Shown here in pieces: positions 4,179 to 33,800 of a stretch of 41,227 nt of DNA. The stretch's first letter is position 1, and each line of letters opens with the position of its first letter. The notes under the pieces were generated by a model that saw only the letters and a list, made by a program, of their open reading frames with translations, was not told the DNA's origin and did no database searches. The translations under genes and the position numbers were made by a program. Origin of the DNA: Octopus bimaculoides (lineage: Eukaryota). The DNA lies in contig NC_068981.1 in NCBI RefSeq assembly GCF_001194135.2, forward strand, positions 102,851,789 through 102,893,015, given 5' to 3'.

Positions 4179-4325
4179 AGCTGCTTTCAGTTTCCGTCTA
4201 CCAAATCCACTCAAGAGTCAGGTCGGCCCGGGGCTATAGTAAAAGACATTTTCCCAAGGTGCCACGCGGTGGAACTGAACCCGGTGCCATGTGGTTGGGA
4301 AGCAAACCTCTTAACACACACTTAC
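3885..4325 (-). mobile_element. Composite SINE with tRNA-like head and internal microsatellite
   Basis: Minus strand head GTTAAGAGGTTTGCTTCCCAACCACATGGCACCGGGTTCAGTTCC...GAGTGGATTTGGTAGACGGAAACTGAAAG, then (TA)/(GA)/(TG)n, then 3' module TTGACAACCGGTG...AAGTACTAGGGTTGATTTG...ACTGGAACAAGTAAACAG. The same modules recur at 8975-9410 and 23140-23400. Confidence 0.75.
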
Positions 4326-5580
4326 GTCTGTACTAAATAAATCTAAAAGTCATTAGTTTAAAGATATTTCCAGGGCAGTATTCCCCAATCTTTTCATATC
4401 CATGGACACTTTTTTTTCTATTTAGATGAAATTTCCCACAAACCCCAGGCTTTTGAAAAGTCTGCCTACTCAATAAGCTTGTTATATTAAGTATGGAATT
4501 CATTTTTCCTAGTTTCACATCTCGTTTGAAAATCACATAATCTGAGTAATTATGTTTTACACTGCAGACTTTTACAATTTTGAGCATTGACTTCCAATAC
4601 TATCTCTGTAGAGCTTAGTTTTGGCACCACTAATTTAAGACTACATCAGATAATGTTCTATTCTTATATAAAACATTAAGTAAAGTGTGTGATTTCAGGA
4701 AGGTTTGACTGCTATTTCTAGCAGTTCAGGTAACTGCATAGAGTCTTTTTAGTTCACTTGTTAAACAAATTACTGTTGCTTAACAATAGACTAACCCTGA
4801 TCGTGCAAATCTTTGATTAAAAACATCCCATCCGAACTATATTATTTAATGACTTACCCCTCTTTTAAGAGAGTGGAGTGTGATTTGGAGGAGGTAGGGT
4901 AGCTATTTCTCGTAGGTCAAGCGAGCATGACGAGGCTCCCACACTGGTTCATGTACCCCATTTACATCTAGGTGGACTGGACAGTATAGAATTAAGTTGC
5001 TTTAGCCACGAAAACACCGTAGCGTTGCTGTTGGTATACAAACCATTCCATACATGTCAGTTGTCATCTATGGCTCTATTACTTCTACTATCTGCACTTT
5101 TGTTTGGAATGTTTAGAAGGAATAAAATTCAGTTGCTCTTTCAAAGTACAGCGAAAAATCATTGGTTAGTCGGTTCTACATACTTTCTGTTGTACTATTT
5201 TTATTTATATTTATTTTTTGCTTTATGTTTTTGATTGACAGTCCGACCTGCAGGTTATACAAATGTAGGTTAAGTTTGTTTCTGGTGGAATGAAGGTCAC
5301 AGAGGTTAATCACTACCGCTCCACCACCAATTTCCTCTTCTCTCTGCTCTCCTCCTACATCACTTACCAATTCCGTTCGTTTGAAACTATTCTTCCTTTG
5401 GCAGTTCTCTTTCAGTGACTGTGTTAACTCTTTGTGGTTTCTCAGCGTTAATAACTTACTATTTATTATTACTCATTATATGGAAGGAAGAGCCGTCAGG
5501 TCGATTATGTCATCAATTTATAAGAAACTGCAGAGGCTCACCATCGTCGTCTTAGTCGCAGTCGTTGTTTTTCTTCAGTT

Positions 5581-5760
5581 CCAGATCAGTCCTGGTTGAG
5601 TAAACCTTTGATCAAACACATTCCGACTATGACCATCTCGACACTTTTTTTTTCAAAGATAAGCTATCTACAACCATATTATCCAAAGTGTCTACTTTTA
5701 GAAAACGGTTGGATATAATTTAAATGAACTCTGACTGATAATTCTCGCAAGTCGGACGAT
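5581..5760 (+). repeat. Dispersed repeat family copy (CCAGATCAG...TGATCAAA..CATTCC..CTATGACCATC... family)
   Basis: Similar segments recur at ~4790-4950, 7085-7340, 25085-25240 (minus), 33870-34030, 35855-35920 and 38240-38400. Confidence 0.6.
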
Positions 5761-5953
5761 GACATCCAAGTTACAACCTTTACTGCCGCTTGGGGCAGAG
5801 AGGGGTCACTAATCTAATAAATAATCTCCTAAAGAAGTACAGTTCTCTACTCTCTGGTTAACTGAGTTTTACTGAAGCATTTAAAAATCTATCTTGACTA
5901 ATTTGATATAGTGTAGGATAGACCAGTAGCTTTCAGTCTTCTGAAGCTCATTG

Positions 5954-7340: not shown

Positions 7341-8094
7341 ATTAATCATCGATTATACTGTCTTATATTTATGTCGCAATTCTTTCAGTATGTTCTCAGC
7401 AGATCGACTCGATCATTCTGTTTCTTGATATGTAATGGAACACACATCACTCATGGAGTAGAGAAAGCCTTGGACAACATGGACTTTTCTCCGAGTTGAT
7501 TCAAGCCAACTGAGATCAACTTCTGATACAAACGTAGTAAGGTGACCGATTACGTACGACTCACAGCCATTTCTCATATGTTAAATCTCTAGTGCTCTTA
7601 TCTAAAAAAAAGTTTCAAAATGTTTCCCCCCACACAAAACAACGAAATCAAAAACAAAGAAATATCTGCTCAGGTCATTTACAGCTTGCTGGAAAAGTCG
7701 TGGTGTGTTTATAGCTGTTGAGAGCAAGAGGAAATGTTTCGTTTTTGATTTGTTATTGATGTTTACCTGTTTAAAATCTCGATCATCTCTGATCGAGATC
7801 GAGTAGACTTATGGACAAAGTAGTTACAACTTTGACCTTTTGGTTTTTTCCTTTTTTATCTTTCTCTTTTTTTTTTTTAATTATTACTATAGACAGATGC
7901 ATGGCTGCGTCGTTAAAAAGCTCGCTTTTCTATCAAGGACTATATTGTTTAATTTGTCCAATGCTTTCTCCCACGTTTCTTTTTCAAATCCTTGGGTATA
8001 AACTGAAAAAAATTTAGCTTCTATTTTTAGCAGATCAAGTGACCATGTAAAGACTTCCCTCACTGGTTTGTTCCTCTTTGATAAAAAAAAAAAT

Positions 8095-8880
8095 AATTAA
8101 TCAATATTCACTATTGTTTGAATATAACTAGGTCGATACTTACTATGGTATAAACACAATTAGGTCAATACTTACTATTGCAAGAATATAATTAGATCAA
8201 TACTTACTATTGTATAAACATATTTAGATCAATATCTAGTTTTGCTTGAACACAAAATTAGGTCAATGCTTACTATTGCATGAACGTAAATAAGTTAATA
8301 CTTTCCTCTCTATGGACATAAAGGTCACACTTATGTGAACATAACTAGGTCACTATTTACTATGGTTTGGATACAATTAGATCTATATTTACTTTGGCAT
8401 GGGCGTAATTAGATCAATATTAGTACTATTGTATATATAATTAGGTAAATACATATTGCATCAGCATAATTGGGTCATTGCTTACTATAACATGGATATT
8501 TCAGTCGATACTTACGTTACCATAGTTAAAGAAATTCTTAGTATTTTGTAAACATATTTAAAGGAATATTTTTTTACAGCTGTGTAATCATAATTAAGTC
8601 AACAGTCATTATTACGTGAAAATAAACGGGTCAATAGTAACTATTTTGTGAACAAAAACAGGTCAATAATCTCGGTTGTTTGGGCACAGATATGTCAATA
8701 GTCACTATTGTGTGGACATAACTCGGTCAATAGTCATAATTGTGTAAACATATATGGATCAATAGTCACTATTCTGTGGGATAGTTGGGTCAAAACTGGC
8801 CATTGCATGGACCTAACTGGGTCAACAGTCACTATTATGTGAACATAAGTAGGTGAATACTTACTATTGTATGAACATTA
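8095..8880. repeat. Diverged ~32-bp minisatellite, about 24 units
   Basis: Approximate consensus AGGTCAATACTTACTATTGTATGAACATAATT in head-to-tail units. 3' units shift to GGGTCAATAGTCACTATT. Confidence 0.9.
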
Positions 8881-23400: not shown

Positions 23401-24249
23401 TGTGGGTTAAATTATAATTCACATATAAGGAACCTTTTCTGTAATTGGCGGAGCGTTGGATACAATGCATTACAGCGATTATTCCGGTCCTCTGCTCTCT
23501 GAGTTCAAATTCCGCCTTTGATTTTAGATAAAAATGCACAAAATCGGAATAGCGTAATTGTCAGGGCGCCAAACAAGATGCTTAGCCCTATCTGTTTTGG
23601 CTTTTTGCATTCTGACAGAAACAACTGTTATCCAACTGATAGGAAATGATACCCAGCTTTTCTGAGCTTTTCTGAGCTTTCCCTTGGACAGTATTGGTGG
23701 CGTACAGTGTGTGTGCTGGAACTTGCATACATAGGCAATTGCTAGTCGTCCACAAAATAAACTTTGCTTAAACCTACACATAGAGGTACAGATATATTAT
23801 TAAGTCTTGCTAACGGAGGCCTAAGAGACTGGTTTAAAACAACAATATGTAAGTCTGCCAAATTTTCAAGTGCACTAAGCATCATAAGTGGAATAGCTAT
23901 GACCGAAATTCAGTTTCCAAGGGGATTACACGACATGAAATCTACAAACTTTATTTCCATTATTGAATTGTGTCCTGCCCACTTTCCCACTTTTATCGCT
24001 TCTTAAACACTCTGTCAGTAAGGTGTTTACCAATCATAAATCTCATGACATGGTTTTGAAGTACTTCACTTTTTGAAGTTATTTTTTATCAGGCCAGGTG
24101 ACACCGTCAAACCTAATCCACTTCTAAGTTGCACAGAGACAATATGTATGCTATAAATCTAAACTTTGACTTGAATTGATATTCGTGTTAGGAAAAGTTG
24201 TCCATGCAAATAAAAGTTGACGGCTACCTTGTTACTGTTCAAAGCAAAA

Positions 24250-24470
24250 ATATTTGTTTCAAATTTTGCTACAAAGCCTGCAATTTTAGGGCAAGGGGTT
24301 AGTCGGTTATATTAACTCAGTGCTTGAATGATACTTTATTTTATCGCCCCCAAGAGAATGAGAGGAAAGGTTGACCTTAGCAGAATTTGAGCAGGGGACG
24401 TAAAGAGCCGGAAGAAATGTCGATAAGTATTTGTTCCGACGCGCTAACGGTTCAGCCAGTTCGTCGCGTT
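24250..24470 (-). mobile_element. SINE (family of 34813-35024)
   Basis: Reverse complement of the GGCGAGCTGG...AAATGCTTAG...TTCAAATTCTGCTAAGGTCAACC...ATAAAATAAAGTA family. Confidence 0.7.
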
Positions 24471-26139: not shown

Positions 26140-26410
26140 TATATAGTGAGAATTTACCCAAAACATCAAAGACGAAGACGCGTGTGTAAACAACAAACAG
26201 ATGTATTAGTTTAACGCTCGGGAAGTGAGAAAGTCTTTTACGTTTCGAGCCTACACTCTTCGACAGAAAGGAACACAGAAATAAACAGGGAGAGAAAATA
26301 GAAAAAGGTTTAGTGGCTAGCGATCTCTCATGGCGAATGCCAGACAGAGGGGTCACGCACGAGAGCTAGGAAGAAGGGGAGATAATAAAGTAGTGGAGAT
26401 AATAAAGTAG
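26140..26410 (-). mobile_element. Penelope-like element terminal (pLTR/UTR) fragment
   Basis: Minus strand TTCTGTCGAAGAGTGTAGGCTCGAAACGTAAAAGACTTTCTC... has the GAAGAG..CTCGAAACG pattern typical of Penelope-like termini, followed by (TA)n. No RT or GIY-YIG coding remnant was recognised. Confidence 0.55.
26235..26270 (-). ncRNA. Minimal hammerhead-ribozyme-like motif (Penelope type), core variant
   Basis: CUUU-CUGUCGA-A-GAG(UGUAGG)CUC-GAAA-CG-UA-AAAG: stem I CUUU/AAAG, stem II GAG/CUC, palindromic ACGU stem III and cleavage triplet GUA. Core position A6 reads U. Confidence 0.5.
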
Positions 26411-27628
26411 TGGTGATCCCAAAACGAAATATCGAGAGGAGGGATCTAGAGAGATACAAGGAAATGTCACGTAGGGTGGGGCACGATGTTAAGGTGACCC
26501 CTCCCAATGAGATCACAAGGACAACTAAAGAAAGGACGATAGTGTACATTTCTAAAATGAAGAAATCAGAGACGGCAACGACACAAGTGGAGAGAACCCT
26601 GAAACCCATCTGGCAAGATATTACTTTGCCAAAGGGAGGAAGATCGTGAAAGTGGAGGTGCGGTTTCTTACCGAGGCAATATCCAGGCAGCATTCAGTAA
26701 CCTCTCTGAAGACTGACGAGGTGGTACTTCTGCCCATATACCTTAGAAGACGTACTCCCAGAGTAAGGGTGGAGAAAACCCCTCCAGAGGTGCATGTGGC
26801 CTGGCTAGTGACAGCAATACTGCTAAGTCTCGAGGAAAAGATTGTGGTCCTCCAAGCAACTAGAACAGCACAAATAAATTTGCAAGGGCAGCGCCTGGAG
26901 ATGGTTATGTAGGCCGCCTCGGGGGACCTGTAGAAGATAGTAGACACCATAACAGTGGGTGAAGACGTGATACTTAGGGTTATGGTGGAGGGCAGGAAGC
27001 CCCGTTGCTACAAGTGTGATCAAAAGACCACATAGGAACGGAATGCCCTCCTCCTCACGTAAAGGCACCAGTGACACTATCAATTGGAAAAGAAACTGCA
27101 CCAACACCTCCTGCGATAACAAATGCTGCAGGAGTAAGTGAGGGAGAATCCAGCAATAAGGAAGAAAAGGAAGACAAAGCACAGGATAAAAGTAAGGATG
27201 AATGGGAAACAACCGGAAAAAAGGAGAAAAAGGAGGACACAAGCTGATGATGTTATCCCCCACCCTATCCCCTCTCCTTACAGACACCAGCCCTCACCCT
27301 ATACCACCAGACATGGACCTCAGCCTGGCAGACACACAAGAGCCACAAATTTCCCCACCCCACCCCGAGAAAAGTACCTTATGGTGTTTTATAGTGACGC
27401 TAGAGAAACTGAGAAAAAAGATTGAAAATTTGAACACTTTGGTAAAAGTGGACACTTCGGATTGTGAGAAGGTGCCCTCTCATGTGAAATGTTCACTCAT
27501 GTCGAGGGAGAACTTTGATAGGCCGGTCAGCGTACTGACTTTTTGTAGAGCTTTAAAATACTGAATTGTCGCAAACTGAATAATAAACGGGGCAATTTGA
27601 TTGGTTAAAATTAATATATAAAAAAAAA
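26410..27628 (+). mobile_element. L1/Tx1-like ORF1 (gag-like: RRM-like region plus CCHC knuckle) pseudogene with no ORF2
   Basis: Motifs ERTIVY, VEVRF, LLPIYLRRRTPRVRVEKTPPEVHVAWLVTAIL and VMVEGRKPR-CYKCDQ(K)DHIGTEC (CX2CX4HX4C at 27006-27046, with a 1-bp deletion). A K/E- and P-rich tail runs to a stop at 27564, then AATAAA (27582-27587) and an A-run (27620-27628). Confidence 0.75.
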
Positions 27629-27676
27629 CTACACAGGTAGTCCAGATTTTGATTTTGCTTCACCTAATCGGCAGTT

Positions 27677-30600
27677 ATGTCAGAATTATCATGTACTTGC
27701 AAAAACGGTAGATGAATTAGTTGCGAAGGATGGTACGGATGTGGATGTACATGTGGAGATAATAAACGCACCGAAAATGTAAATACACGTGCCACAAAAA
27801 GAATACGACTTATGGGAGGTGTCGGCACACGTAAAACAAATGTAAATACAAGAAAACGTAGTGTGTATACGGAACAAGAGAATTTTGAACCAGAAGGTAG
27901 CGATCCATTATGAATTGCTTCAAAAGTGGGGGCATTGTATGAAGCATTTGGTTTAAAATCAGTATCATCATTACCAGGAAAAGCTAAACATGAAAGAACC
28001 CGAATGGAAGACTTTGACAAAGCTGCTAAAAAGCGACTAGTGAAACTAACCAGTACCATAATGAAAAAAAGTATGCGCTATCATTAGTGTGTATGATGCC
28101 GAAGGCCTTATGAAAGAGTTTGTTAAAAATGAAGAAGGTGTCGTCGATGAAGGCAAATTAGCGGAAAATATAATTAAAGTACGAGATGCATTGCCGAGAA
28201 ATGCACAAGCTGATGCTGTTACAACTCCATTAGCGGTATCCTTCGTTTCAAGTATTTTGAACGATCATTTTGGTATTGGTAAGAAGAAAGTAGCTTCATT
28301 AAGACGAGAGTATAAACATATGGCAAGTGAAAAGCAGCTTACACCTTTCAATAGATCAATTATACGATACGATCGTGATCAAATGAAAGCTGCAGTGGAG
28401 TTTGTTTTGTCGGATGCTAATGTATGCTGAATCTCATGGGGTACCAAAACATTTACGATTAATGGCGAAGAAATACATCTCCCCAAGCTGATTAGGAAAA
28501 AGAATACAACTATAATGCTACGTGATTACAAAGAAACCATACCTCAAAATAAACAATTAGGCTTTACATCATTCCGGAAGATAGTCAAAACGTTAACTAC
28601 CAAGGATCAAACAATTAAACAAGCGGTCGATTATGTGTAGAGAGTATTAACGTATGATAATTTTGCACGTTTGAAGACTGTTGTTGCTACTAGTGCCGAA
28701 TCAGAATCTTTGAATGCTATTGTTAATGGTTTAGAAGCTTACATTAAGACAACCTATGAGGGAGACATTTCTACATGTAGTGTCACGGATAAAGAATTTT
28801 CTTGATCCATCTCTGGAGCGGAAATGAAACACTGTGGTGTTGGTTGCTCCCCCAAGCATGTAATACAATACATTAAACGGAAAGTGAGCCCAGAACATAA
28901 AATTCTATTGAATGATGCTATGGAAAAATTATATCTTTTATTTGGTCATCGTGTGAGAATAGTTAATCAACGCAATAGGATTGATGAAATAATGTTCAAT
29001 TTATGTTTAGAAGATGCTATGGTTGTTGTTATGGATTTCAAAACGAAATTCGAAGCTATATACTAAATGGGAAAAAAACTACAGATTTTTACGTTAAGAA
29101 AGGGCCATCGTGGCATGGAGCCATAACGTATACAAGATACACCGACGAGGAACGGCATAATACTGAAAATTTAAAGGATTATCGTATCACTTACTTCGAT
29201 CACATTTCTACCGGGGATTGTAAGCAAGACTATGTGGCTGTTATGTCCTATTTTGAGGCAGTATGTAAACAAATATCGATCAAATTTCCATACATTCGAA
29301 ATCTTTATGTACACTCTGACAGCGCAAGATGTTGTAAGGAGGGAAACTTATTGTTTACATTATATAAAATTGCAGATAGATACAACCTTAAACTTTGTAC
29401 TATTGTACACACTGGTGAACAAAATGGTAAAGGCGGTATCAACGCTCATTTTGCTACAGTTATGAGGCATGTGTATATGCATTGTAATATGAGTTCAGAT
29501 GTTATAAATCCTGTTGAATTAGTTGATGCTTTAGATGCTAATGGCGGTGTATGTAATACAGTGGCAGAATTGGTTGGTATTAATAGGCATGCTGTTGAAC
29601 GGTATGAACAGGAAAACTTGGAGATAATTGGAAAATTACAAAACGTAGGTGATCATATGGAAGTACAGTTTGATTCGACAAGAAATTCCGCTTCGGTTTA
29701 TGAAAATTCGAACTTATTATTGACAGCAACTTACAACCTTATCAATGACACTACGAACGACGTAAATAAACGAAATTGTGAAAGCGAGTCCGATGAAGAA
29801 GATTGTGCTTCCAATGAAAATGAAATATTTGATACAGACACTGTTGAAGATATTGGTGTTGTAGAGAAAGGTAGAGGCAGCTTAACAAAATGTATTGTTT
29901 ATGGTGTTGAGGAGAATATCCCAGAGAAGCATCGTATTGGATTTGCTGTAGCATCAAATATTAATGATTTGGATATGGAATCAGACGATAAAAATTCTCT
30001 TCAATGTAATTTATGTCGTAGGGAATTTGCAACTGCCTACAAAATGGAAAACCATAATTGCAAGGGAGCCTTAAGAGAATAAAATTTAATCAGTCAAGCT
30101 ATTGTTTATGCTAAAGATATATGTGAACAGCATCAATTTGAGGTGATTAATACTTGTTCAAATGTTGAAGAACATGTTTGATACCATTCATGAAGCGATC
30201 CAGCATAATAATGAGTGTTGTGGATTTGAAACAGGATGGGCAAGAACAAGAAAGCACGGTAATAAGTATGGTAGAAAGTATGTGGATCCATTTAAACAAG
30301 AAATTATTGATATGTTTAATTTGGGTAATGAAAACGAAGCTATGAAACGAGGTCCAGGTAAAGTGTTAGTGGAACTTAAACGTAAACATCCCGGGCATTT
30401 GGATTTACGATCGGAAACAGAAATTTGAACTGTTATTTCATGCTTGATGAAAACAAAGAGAAAAGGACAATCAACATTATATAATGCTAGCCGTGGAATT
30501 CATGAACCATTCAAGTCAACAGTGCTGGAAATATTTCGGGAAGATCCTAATATTACGCTACGCAGGGCATGGAAATTGTTCCAACAAAGACATCCTCCAA

Positions 30601-30695
30601 TCGATGATATATCCACGTATCCAGCTGAGGCAAAGTTAAAGAGAAAAATATCTTCTTTAAAGGTTAAGTATAGGAAAACAGGTGAAATACCTTAG
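27677..30695 (+). pseudogene. ~1000-aa DDD transposase pseudogene, Sola3-like
   Basis: One colinear frame is reconstructable across 3 frameshifts (~28065, ~29065, ~30170) and 7 internal stops. Catalytic-type motifs: VVVMDFKTKFE (D 29034), EKTTDFYVKKGPSWHG, YVHSDSA (D 29318) and HTGEQNGKGGINAHF (N 29441, the expected third D, 40 residues after D2). It also has a CNLC-x12-HNC finger (30005-30061) and a GWA-containing C-terminal domain. The Sola3 assignment rests on recalled motifs plus the terminus. Confidence 0.75.
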
Positions 30696-30853
30696 AGATT
30701 TAAAGAAAACATTGTAACTTTTCGAAAAATTGACATTTTCGAGAAAATAAAGTATTTTCGAGAATTTATAAATATGCGACACAGCTATAGCACGATTTTA
30801 CTGAGTTTTGGTAGTTTATGTTTCTACAAAACTGGGTCAAACTTCCATACTCT

Positions 30854-30874
30854 GAGTCGTGTAACGACTCTTAA
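30854..30874 (+). mobile_element. Putative right terminus of the Sola3-like element plus TTAA target site
   Basis: GAGTCGT-GTA-ACGACTC hairpin ending in CTC, immediately followed by TTAA, 175 bp after the transposase stop. Sola3 is described with GAG...CTC ends and TTAA TSDs. Confidence 0.55.
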
Positions 30875-33800
30875 AAAAAAGAAGTTTCAATGAGGTCGCT
30901 GGAAGTGTGGTTTTCGAGTGGCTGTCATTTCATCCATCTATTCTTTTTCCATGTCATCTTATTTCATTCGTTTATTTTTTCCCCACTTGTCCTGTCCTTG
31001 TATTGTCCCTCTGTGTTGTCTCCTTGTGGGTAATAAAGAATCAACAATTGTTTCCATCACTAAAGGATTACGGTTGATGTTGTCACTCCTCATACGTTCT
31101 GCTTGTTGGTTGTGCTTCTGATACAATGAGACAGAATTTCGCAGTGTTTGATTCTTGTTCCTATACCTGTGTTAAGTAAATTACGAAACTTGACACTGGG
31201 GCTGATCTAATCGACTTAGTCCCTCCTCCATAATTGCTGGCCTTGAGCCAAAATTTGAAACCAATATATTATCGGGATTTAATCTCCCTGAAATCGATAA
31301 AATGACCTGGCTGCTGCAGAATTTAGATTTCATGAAATATTTATTTCGTATCTCTCTATTCTGTGCCAATTCGACTGCTCATAAATATTTTAGGTCAATG
31401 TTGTGGATTTGCCAAACGGGTCAATGGATTTTAATTTCTTTTGCGCCAAATCCAAGTAAGTTTCTTTTTAAAACAAACAATGGTAAATGATATATAATTT
31501 ACAGAGAGATCTTCAATACTACTTGTGTAGGCAGATATTAATGATAAATTTTAAAACACTGCAAATTGTTCTGATATTTTGTTGTTAACTGAAGTGAAAA
31601 TTCATAAGATCAGTGAACTTTAATTGTTAAAGAGTAGGTTGGGTAGCACAATATTTTTGAAATCCTAAGTAAGATATTTGACAACCAGTTTACAACCATC
31701 CAATAAGGGAAAACAAGCACTGTAAGAAGATTATACAAGTTGAGGGGAAACTAAAAACAAGTTTTATATTTATTTGGATATGATGTAAGGGTGATGTAAA
31801 TCTGAAGAGTATTTCTCTGACTGGCTTATCTACCAGTCAGCAGAAACAATTTTTATAGGAAATACGAAACAAAAATTAAGTTGGACTTTCTCACAACTGT
31901 AGGATTGCTTAAAATCATTGCGAGAATTATATATGATTTTATGAATCTACAAGATGGGTGACTTACTTTTGTTTTTTCTTTCAGATACGAATCGATTTTA
32001 TTTGACTGCACTTTAATAAGTTACGAAACCTCTTTTTACATAAATATGTTAATCACTTTTAAAAGTTGATGGAAAGAAAATAGAACAATCTAATTTATAG
32101 GTGACCGCAAATACAGAATACGTCATCAACAATTACTCAAAAGTTTTTCTAATCTACTCACTGCCCTGTCTCCACTTGGCTCAAAGAGTAATATATCAGA
32201 AATGTTCTCGTCTCTTCAAATGTCTGAAACGATTTCCGCAAAGAAAATTAGGCTTATTCTTCTATGAATAATAAATCAACTGCTGCAATCAAAACCAAGT
32301 CTTTTGAGAACTTAAGTAACATGTTACTTAAAGAACCACTCCAAGCTAGTTGTCCTATAAAGAATATATTCAAAATTGTTTCACTTTTACGTTGGCAAAT
32401 TTTCTTTAAGCAGAGAATCGAAGTTTTGAATCGAATCTGTCGATAATGTTCAAGTGTTTGCAAAATTGTGTCTTGAAATTAGTTAGCTGAACCTGCGTTG
32501 ACCAGCCTATAATTTTTAGCCTTTTACAACACTTTGGAGCAAATATTTTGCAACTGTTAATAAAACACGAGAATGAAATATAGAATAAGGGAATAGTGTA
32601 TGTGGAGAACTATATAGCTTCATATTTGTAATTAGCTATCTTTTGACCAATGGCATTTAACGAATTGATATTGTTTGCCCAACAAAGTAGATTATGACTA
32701 CCCCAACTTTCTTTTTCAGGAATATTACAGCTCGGACTATAAAATAGTAGAATGTAGTGTGAAAGAAATTTAGCCGTTATTTCTGTCAGGTCGAGTAACC
32801 GTATAAACTCCTTTGTTTGTTCATAATTCAACGAGAATGTGATTCGTGTAATTCAATCTTCTTGAGAAAACTTTTCTTTTCTTTTTTGTAAACATAAACT
32901 TTTTTCCCTTGTACTTACTGGATATATCATCTAAACTTGCTTTCCCGAGAAAAAATTAGCAGTATGGTGAAGACAGTTTTATTGCTTTAGTCATTTATAC
33001 CCAATCTCTTAAAATGTGCTCAAAGGCATCATCATTTGAGAAATAAGGCACGATTCAAGTTGTGGTAACTGGTTTATAAATGATTTATGGAAAATGTAAT
33101 CAATGGAGAAGAAAAACTTAACCCTTTGGATATTTTCAACATTATAGTACTTTATGACACCATAATTAAAGTACTTGTGCCAAGTGATAGGGCATGAAGG
33201 TTTCCTCATATATTTAAAAGTTCTAAGTCATTTATATTTGCTCCATTTTGTATAAATTTGAACTAAAATATTTCATTGTATCAAGCAGTTGTGTTTAGCT
33301 TTTACATTTAAGAACCAAAGATATATTTTATGTAAAATCTCAGCCATAACAATAGATGTACAAATACAATATTACTAATATATTCTATTTATGACTCAGA
33401 TAACAGAGCACCAGACCGCCGTTAAAGACCACTATATTTAGGTGTTATAGATTTTTAAAAACTATTGTTATAGATTTTTTTTGAAGCGAAGAGTAGCGCT
33501 CGTAAGTCTTTATCTAGTCTTCGAAACTACAAGGAGGAAGGGACGAACTTGTCCTCCTACCAAAGATCTAATCTGAGTGGTTGTAATAGAGTGAACTCAG
33601 CTAAAGACATCCAAGAAAAATGTGGTGGTCATAAACCGAGCGACTGATAGTTTACTCTCAAGAACGCGGAATGCAAAGAGCCAAAACAAACGACTCTTTG
33701 TGATATTTGCTCCGCCGATCTATCTTGATCGGTTTTATATTTTGTCAACCTCAAAAAGATGGAAACCAAAGTTGGGTTTGACTGGATTAGAACTAACAAA

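Follow-up and report, generated by a model that had tools for sequence, protein, structure and literature searches.

The Sola superfamily of DNA transposons and its Sola3 group were reportedly defined by Bao, Jurka and Kapitonov in 2009, and the reference element of Sola3 is said to be Sola3-1_HM of Hydra. We know of no Pfam model, solved structure or functional study for Sola3. The subject here is a stretch of 41,227 nt from Octopus bimaculoides (GCF_001194135.2, contig NC_068981.1, positions 102,851,789 to 102,893,015, forward strand). We call this whole stretch the window, and positions are counted from its first letter. The region ~27513-30870 of the window is very probably one old, dead, nearly full-length copy of an autonomous-type Sola3 cut-and-paste DNA transposon. 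It is an ordinary genomic fossil of a known, little-studied transposon group.

No Pfam model matches are reported for Sola (PMC5751038). In their supplement, Majorek et al. 2014 (PMC3985635) give RNase H core sequences for Sola3-1_HM and a C. remanei protein (their clade E.13), for Sola2-1_HM and for Sola1-1_AP. Kolobok elements carry a C/DxxH signature after the second Asp and before the last acidic residue, end in 5'-RR..YY-3' termini and duplicate TTAA (PMC9587614). A mollusc transposon survey recorded Sola elements with intact open reading frames (ORFs) in bivalves only (PMC10294476). Our literature search found no mention of Sola3 in cephalopods.

The transposase gene of the window copy is decayed. 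An earlier note on this DNA had proposed that the small ORFs of the region hide one ~1000-aa protein, and they do. Chaining the three forward frames over the coding span gave one conceptual protein of ~1012 aa (three-frame translation, alignment A1). It starts with the ATG at 27677 and ends with the natural stop TAG at 30693-30695. Intact homologues of 984-1024 aa from marine eukaryote assemblies align with it from the first to the last residue. Identity to two of them, P0006 and P0001, is 44-47% (tblastn E 1e-146). This full-length colinearity and E value exclude a chance origin of the frame. The note had counted three frameshifts and seven stops. The frameshifts stand. The first is a single additional A in the A-run at ~28064-28071, the second adds 2 nt somewhere in 29061-29082, and the third is bounded to 30153-30178. 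The stops number eight (27713, 27911, 28428, 28638, 28803, 29064, 30080 and 30426). The extra one, at 29064, falls inside frameshift 2, and the count is seven if it is not tallied separately. The note had also placed the start of the element at 27677. That position is the ATG only, and the element begins about 155 bp upstream.

The family of this protein was compared with two Sola3 reference sequences, the ~130-aa core fragments of Sola3-1_HM and of C. remanei CRE_08425. A full-length profile (A1) and a core profile of 29 members (A3) were used with hhalign. A1 matched the Sola3-1_HM core at 94.9% (E 5e-8) and the CRE_08425 core at 97.6% (E 3e-12). A3 matched the Sola3-1_HM core at 98.6% (E 7e-16). 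The controls were not significant, with 0.6% for A1 against the Sola2-1_HM core, 0.2% for A1 against the Sola1-1_AP core and 0.4% for A3 against the piggyBac core. The window's own broken core matched CRE_08425 by BLASTP at E 2e-7. The family also resembles Sola3 in its DDD triad, carried on an RNase H-like fold, and its protist relatives show the 4-bp target duplication. Pfam searches with the window protein and seven relatives gave no family match beyond a weak C2H2 finger, as in Sola. This absence argues against hAT, Tc1/mariner, PIF, MULE, piggyBac, P, Merlin, Transib, CMC, Zator and rve-type transposases. Transposase similarity to the two core fragments supports the Sola3 assignment made in the earlier note, and the Sola1, Sola2 and piggyBac cores do not match. 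The note's description of Sola3 as rare did not hold. An exhaustive profile search with A1 matched 3802 clusters (clustered at 50% identity) at E<=1e-3, of which 311 reached E<=1e-30. Lengths of 1000-1300 aa were common among the matches.

The family might instead be a separate undescribed superfamily, or a deep sister group that has only the RNase H core in common with Sola3. Such a position would account for the unusual length of the protein (~1000 aa), its Cys cluster and its GWA domain. Likeness to the reference is established over the ~130-aa core only, at 21-30% identity, and the word-indexed protein search returned just five close clusters. The family, however, grades continuously into sequences nearer the reference. 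The member P0135 bridges both sides, with E 2.5e-48 to the A1 profile and BLASTP E 2.8e-30 at 39% identity to the C. remanei core. More than 110 of the 161 members match the reference cores. Signature strings are also held in common with the reference, namely FRE...(Y/F)GKKG.S.H and SDNA with ..Y 3-4 residues further. A separate superfamily is very unlikely on this evidence, and we retain the Sola3 assignment.

The catalytic core carries each motif named in the earlier note at the place given there. MDFK lies at 29031-29042 with the first Asp at 29034-36, and HSDSA lies at 29312-29326 with the second Asp at 29318-20. GKGGINAHF lies at 29426-29452 with the third site at 29441-43, 40 residues after the second as claimed. 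The window copy itself reads D-D-N at the three sites. The third site is Asn in the window and Asp in all intact relatives (..IDAHF) and two octopus paralogues. Intact relatives have SDNA at the second site. Among 29 diverse members, Asp432 and Asp527 with the Asn-Ala that follows do not vary, and conservation of Asp568-x-His-Phe is at least 90% (P0006 numbering). AlphaFold2 gave confident models of the intact homologue P0006 (predicted local distance difference test, pLDDT, 85.4; predicted template modelling score, pTM, 0.76) and of the core alone (pLDDT 89.8, pTM 0.88). The strand-helix order of the core model is that of RNase H. Asp432 lies on strand 1, Asp527 just past strand 4 and Asp568 where the helix that follows strand 5 begins. 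The best PDB matches of this model, at E 3e-4, are to RNase H-fold nucleases. The models predict that the family holds its DDD triad at the canonical positions of the RNase H fold.

Conserved parts were also found outside the core. The N-terminal Cys cluster aligns with the true N-terminus encoded from base 238 in an intact protist relative (L002), and it is probably a small zinc-binding DNA-binding module. A helical region is a further conserved part of the protein. The C2H2-like finger gave a weak match to Pfam zf-C2H2_4 (E 0.14). The GWA.R..G..(Y)G motif of the C-terminal domain is conserved across 118 family members.

Further copies were found in assembly GCA_951406725.2, which is from Octopus vulgaris (PMC10700109). 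Products of short ORFs that share 85-90% identity with the window protein led to three paralogues there (L012, L013 and L014). Besides the window copy, at least these three copies, 86-90% identical, lie at unrelated loci of that assembly. L012 matches window positions 28225-30876 at 90.5% identity. L013 does so at 86-88% over 27643-30299 and 30826-30880, and L014 at 88.4% over 27522-30093 and 30073-30374. The window copy has most of its stops to itself. In one paralogue or more, seven of the eight stop positions hold a sense codon (TGT, CGA, CGA/CAA, TCG, TTA, TAT and CAA; CGC at the eighth), and the paralogue sense codons fit the residues of intact relatives. The third catalytic codon is GAC (Asp) in L012 and L014 and AAC (Asn) in the window and L013. 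The AAC codon of SDNA, which reads SDSA in the window, is retained in all three paralogues.

Frameshifts 1 and 2 occur only in the window copy. The stretch of frameshift 3 has the same length in all four octopus copies, and the more distant relative P0043 reads through it. The common ancestor of the four copies probably already had frameshift 3. This pattern of sequence suggests that they descend from a defective master that would have been mobilised in trans. The window copy is inert because its gene is broken, its active site is mutated and its left tip is damaged. With the left outer tip gone, it could probably not be moved even by transposase supplied in trans.

The right end of the element was placed at 30870. 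It reads ...GTAACGACTC and is followed by TTAA. Beyond this point homology to the three paralogues is lost and the flanks diverge, which makes 30870 the true terminus. The CTC end before TTAA proposed in the earlier note is correct. The octopus copies have a common right-end sequence, ...GAGT(C/T)GTGTAACGA(C/T)T(C), then TTAA or TTAG. The window and L012 end in ...CGA(C/T)TC followed by TTA(A/G). The 3' non-coding region is 175 bp long, versus 184 bp in L002. Two ideas about the ends were set aside. One held the terminal CTC to be a private mutation of CTG, an idea taken from the protists. It was dropped because three octopus copies share ...CGA(C/T)TC, which makes CTC ancestral in octopus. 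The other was an inverted repeat at 27605-27641 and 31518-31554 as alternative ends. It was rejected because paralogue homology stops at 30870.

The left end is more decayed. The outermost ~10-13 nt of its repeat and the left TTAA are not recognisable. Searches within the window by inverted-repeat detection, by a 17-mer with <=3 mismatches and by local alignment found no left repeat. They failed because of a ~10-nt indel in the repeat and the loss of its tip. Only comparison with the paralogue L014 revealed the repeat. L014 has a left end of TTAA followed by GAGTCGCTTCGCGGGTCAGAGTATTGAC..., with the tip GAGTCG.... The window left repeat matches it at 40 of 46 aligned positions, with blastn homology from 27522. 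Against the window right end read as its reverse complement, it matches at 35 of 48 positions, with one ~10-nt indel, and the L014 left end is identical to that reverse complement at 41 of 52. The L014 left end and the window right end together give an octopus element with imperfect inverted repeats of ~50 nt, GAG...CTC tips and a TTAA target. The 5' leader corresponds to 181 bp from the terminus in L002. Coordinates of the features are given in Table 1.

Table 1. Features of the decayed Sola3 copy in the window, with the observations that support them
Feature	Position	Strand	Support
Decayed left terminal inverted repeat, GCCGGTCAGCGTACTGAC...TTTTTGTAGAGC	27513-27564	+	Recognisable from ~27522
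5' leader, left repeat to start codon	27565-27676	+	Colinear with L014 at 88% identity
Decayed transposase frame, ~1012 codons	27677-30695	+	3 frameshifts, 8 in-frame stops; colinear with P0006, P0009, P0002 and P0011
N-terminal cysteine cluster, CTCKNGR*ISCEGWYGCGCTCG, then basic stretch	27692-27757	+	Aligns with CKCKKG.C..C.KC..C.CKC in P0006, P0009 and P0011
RNase H-like DDD catalytic core	29010-29650	+	Motifs, structural models and Sola3 reference core matches
C2H2-like zinc finger, CNLCRREFATAYKMENHNC	30005-30061	+	Cys/His positions kept in 5 of 5 aligned proteins
Conserved C-terminal helical domain, starting GWARTRKHGNKYGRKY	30234-30692	+	Modelled confidently, helices 860-992 of P0006
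3' non-coding end including right terminal inverted repeat (~30806-30870), ending GAGTCGTGTAACGACTC (30854-30870)	30696-30870	+	Paralogue homology ends 30870-30876
TTAA adjoining right terminus	30871-30874	.	Presumably one copy of the target-site duplication

Three TTTTCGA(A/G)AA repeats lie within 46 bp in the 3' subterminal region (30719-30764; at 30719, 30736 and 30755). The expected number of matches in the whole window is 0.36. They may be candidate binding sites for the transposase.

Intact relatives of the element were retrieved from marine protists. Their contigs are mostly 3.4-4.2 kb long, about the size of the element. They contain perfect terminal repeats of 25-28 bp and uninterrupted frames of 984-1024 aa, and one was found in a transcriptome. 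The L002 element is 3416 bp long. It begins with TTAA and CAGTGGAACCACGAGTCGACC..., has a perfect 28-bp inverted repeat and ends with ...CACTG before TTAA, and its frame opens with the Cys cluster at base 238. The same arrangement, including TTAA on either side, recurs in L010 and L008/L009. Elsewhere TTAA was seen at the left end of L014 and at the right ends of L003 and L013. The window has it at the right end only, its left tip being lost. The earlier note had expected GAG..CTC ends with TTAA. These occur in octopus (L014 on the left, the window and L012 on the right). They are not a rule for the clade, in which the protist members have CAG..CTG or CTG..CAG.

Octopus and a protist element are nearly identical over the final ~16-21 nt. 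The window right end AGTCGTGTAACGACTC and the right end of the protist L003, ACTCGTGTAACGACTG, both followed by TTAA, match at 14 of 16 positions. This near identity suggests either that the transposase binding site is very strongly constrained or that marine eukaryotes exchanged the element by horizontal transfer in the past. The clade may possibly still be jumping in marine protists, and we put this forward as a tentative suggestion.

Two family members are joined to other domains. In L001 (GCA_014466275.1), the ORF called at 4198-5808 fuses a Crypton-like / NDC10_II protein to a partial second Sola3-like copy. The full copy in L001 has a left end of TTAA followed by CTGCCAACCC at 449 and no right end. 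This arrangement indicates a rearrangement between two mobile elements. The NDC10_II/Crypton-like Pfam match beside the homologue was rejected as a part of the family, since it stems from the chimeric ORF. The member P0138 has a Ulp1 protease domain at its C-terminus (Peptidase_C48, E 1e-8), a kind of domain that was also captured by several other DNA transposon groups.

The ends bear on a further alternative, that the element belongs to another TTAA-targeting superfamily, Kolobok or piggyBac, and resembles Sola3 only superficially. The TTAA target is common to both. Like the window clade, piggyBac has a DDD transposase on an RNase H-like fold, integrates into TTAA and duplicates it, and has a single gene and short terminal inverted repeats. 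It is unlike it in sequence and profile, and its CCC..GGG termini were not seen in the window clade. The Pfam piggyBac model DDE_Tnp_1_7 (PF13843) did not match the window protein or seven relatives, and the hhalign control against the piggyBac core was negative. For Kolobok, the octopus tips 5'-GA...TC-3' fit the RR..YY rule (PMC9587614), but protist relatives end in CA..TG and break it. In the family consensus, the interval from SDNA to DAHF lacks the published C/DxxH signature (PMC9587614). The features of Kolobok do not occur in the clade as a set, and the clade is set apart from Kolobok by that description and not by sequence. The significant matches of the family are to the Sola3 cores, and we give membership of Kolobok or piggyBac very little credence.

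That the window holds the pseudogene of a host gene domesticated from a transposase is hardly credible: pieces of the element do occur in the octopus gene models P0004, P0069, P0082 and P0144, but the copies lie at unrelated loci with differing flanks, have common terminal repeats ending at TTAA and each carry their own stops and deletions, and P0004 is a chimera whose hexosaminidase exons are absent from this window. The P0004 model joins those exons to a piece of another copy (~400 residues, at 77% identity to the window) and is an annotation chimera caused by an unmasked repeat.

The preferred reading is a decayed Sola3 copy, and some points weigh against it. The Sola3 match is based on two core fragments that come from one supplement. 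No retrieved octopus copy has both ends with matching TTAA, and the duplication was seen in protist relatives only. Likeness to solved RNase H-fold proteins in Foldseek is weak (template modelling score, TM, ~0.35). To our knowledge, transposition has been shown experimentally for no Sola3 element, and the mechanism is drawn by analogy. Separately from these points, the trimmed core matched generic RNase H-fold nucleases only, namely herpesvirus terminase nuclease (E 3e-4), Argonaute PIWI and uS11. The full-length fold search gave no significant match, with piggyBat at rank 50 (E 0.6), and the sequence search of the PDB gave no solved structure related to the window family. No terminal inverted repeats were found around P0135 (locus L011), the member nearest the reference core. 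A literature search whose scope lay outside the original Sola paper found no statement of Sola3 termini or target site.

A working element would be ~3.35-3.4 kb long, with terminal inverted repeats, GAG...CTC tips in octopus and one intron-less gene for a transposase of ~1000 aa. By analogy with DDE/DDD transposases, the N-terminal modules (the Cys cluster and the helical domains) would bind the repeats. The RNase H-like core, with three Asp holding metal ions, would excise the element. The same core would then join it into a TTAA site, which would be duplicated on both sides.

The window copy is a dead repeat to be masked and has little importance by itself. The repeat accounts for the short unrelated ORFs that gene predictors produce in octopus annotations, and for chimeric models like P0004. 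The decayed copies in Octopus extend the mollusc record of Sola. The clade is a starting point for the missing profile model and for a first transposition assay. It offers a modelled transposase of ~1000 aa, a conserved D/D/D triad, defined repeats, a TTAA target and apparently intact members in marine protists. If active, the protist elements would make Sola3 experimentally tractable for the first time and would provide a second TTAA-specific DDD system, one with no sequence relationship to piggyBac.

The window resembles draft sequence of an animal genome, with a base composition of ~35% G+C, and microsatellites and N runs are abundant. No tRNA or Rfam matches were found in it. Directly upstream of the damaged left tip, the segment at 26389-27561 (+) is purine-rich with ~45% G+C and has several long stop-free frames. 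It has no Pfam match. One of its frames contains KDHIGTECP, which resembles a decayed CCHC knuckle. The segment may be what is left of a different mobile element, or else a low-complexity exon.

A short interspersed repeat occurs around the transposon in both orientations, at 24247-24312, 30992-31040, 31194-31270 and 32506-32549. The same repeat is inserted inside the O. vulgaris paralogue L014 at 8069-8157. It is probably a family like the short interspersed nuclear elements (SINEs) or MITEs, the transposable elements of the miniature inverted-repeat type. Elsewhere in the window, two arrays of a 32-bp tandem repeat lie at 8093-8488 and 8581-8878. They contain 12.7 and 9.3 copies, respectively, and are ~65% matched.

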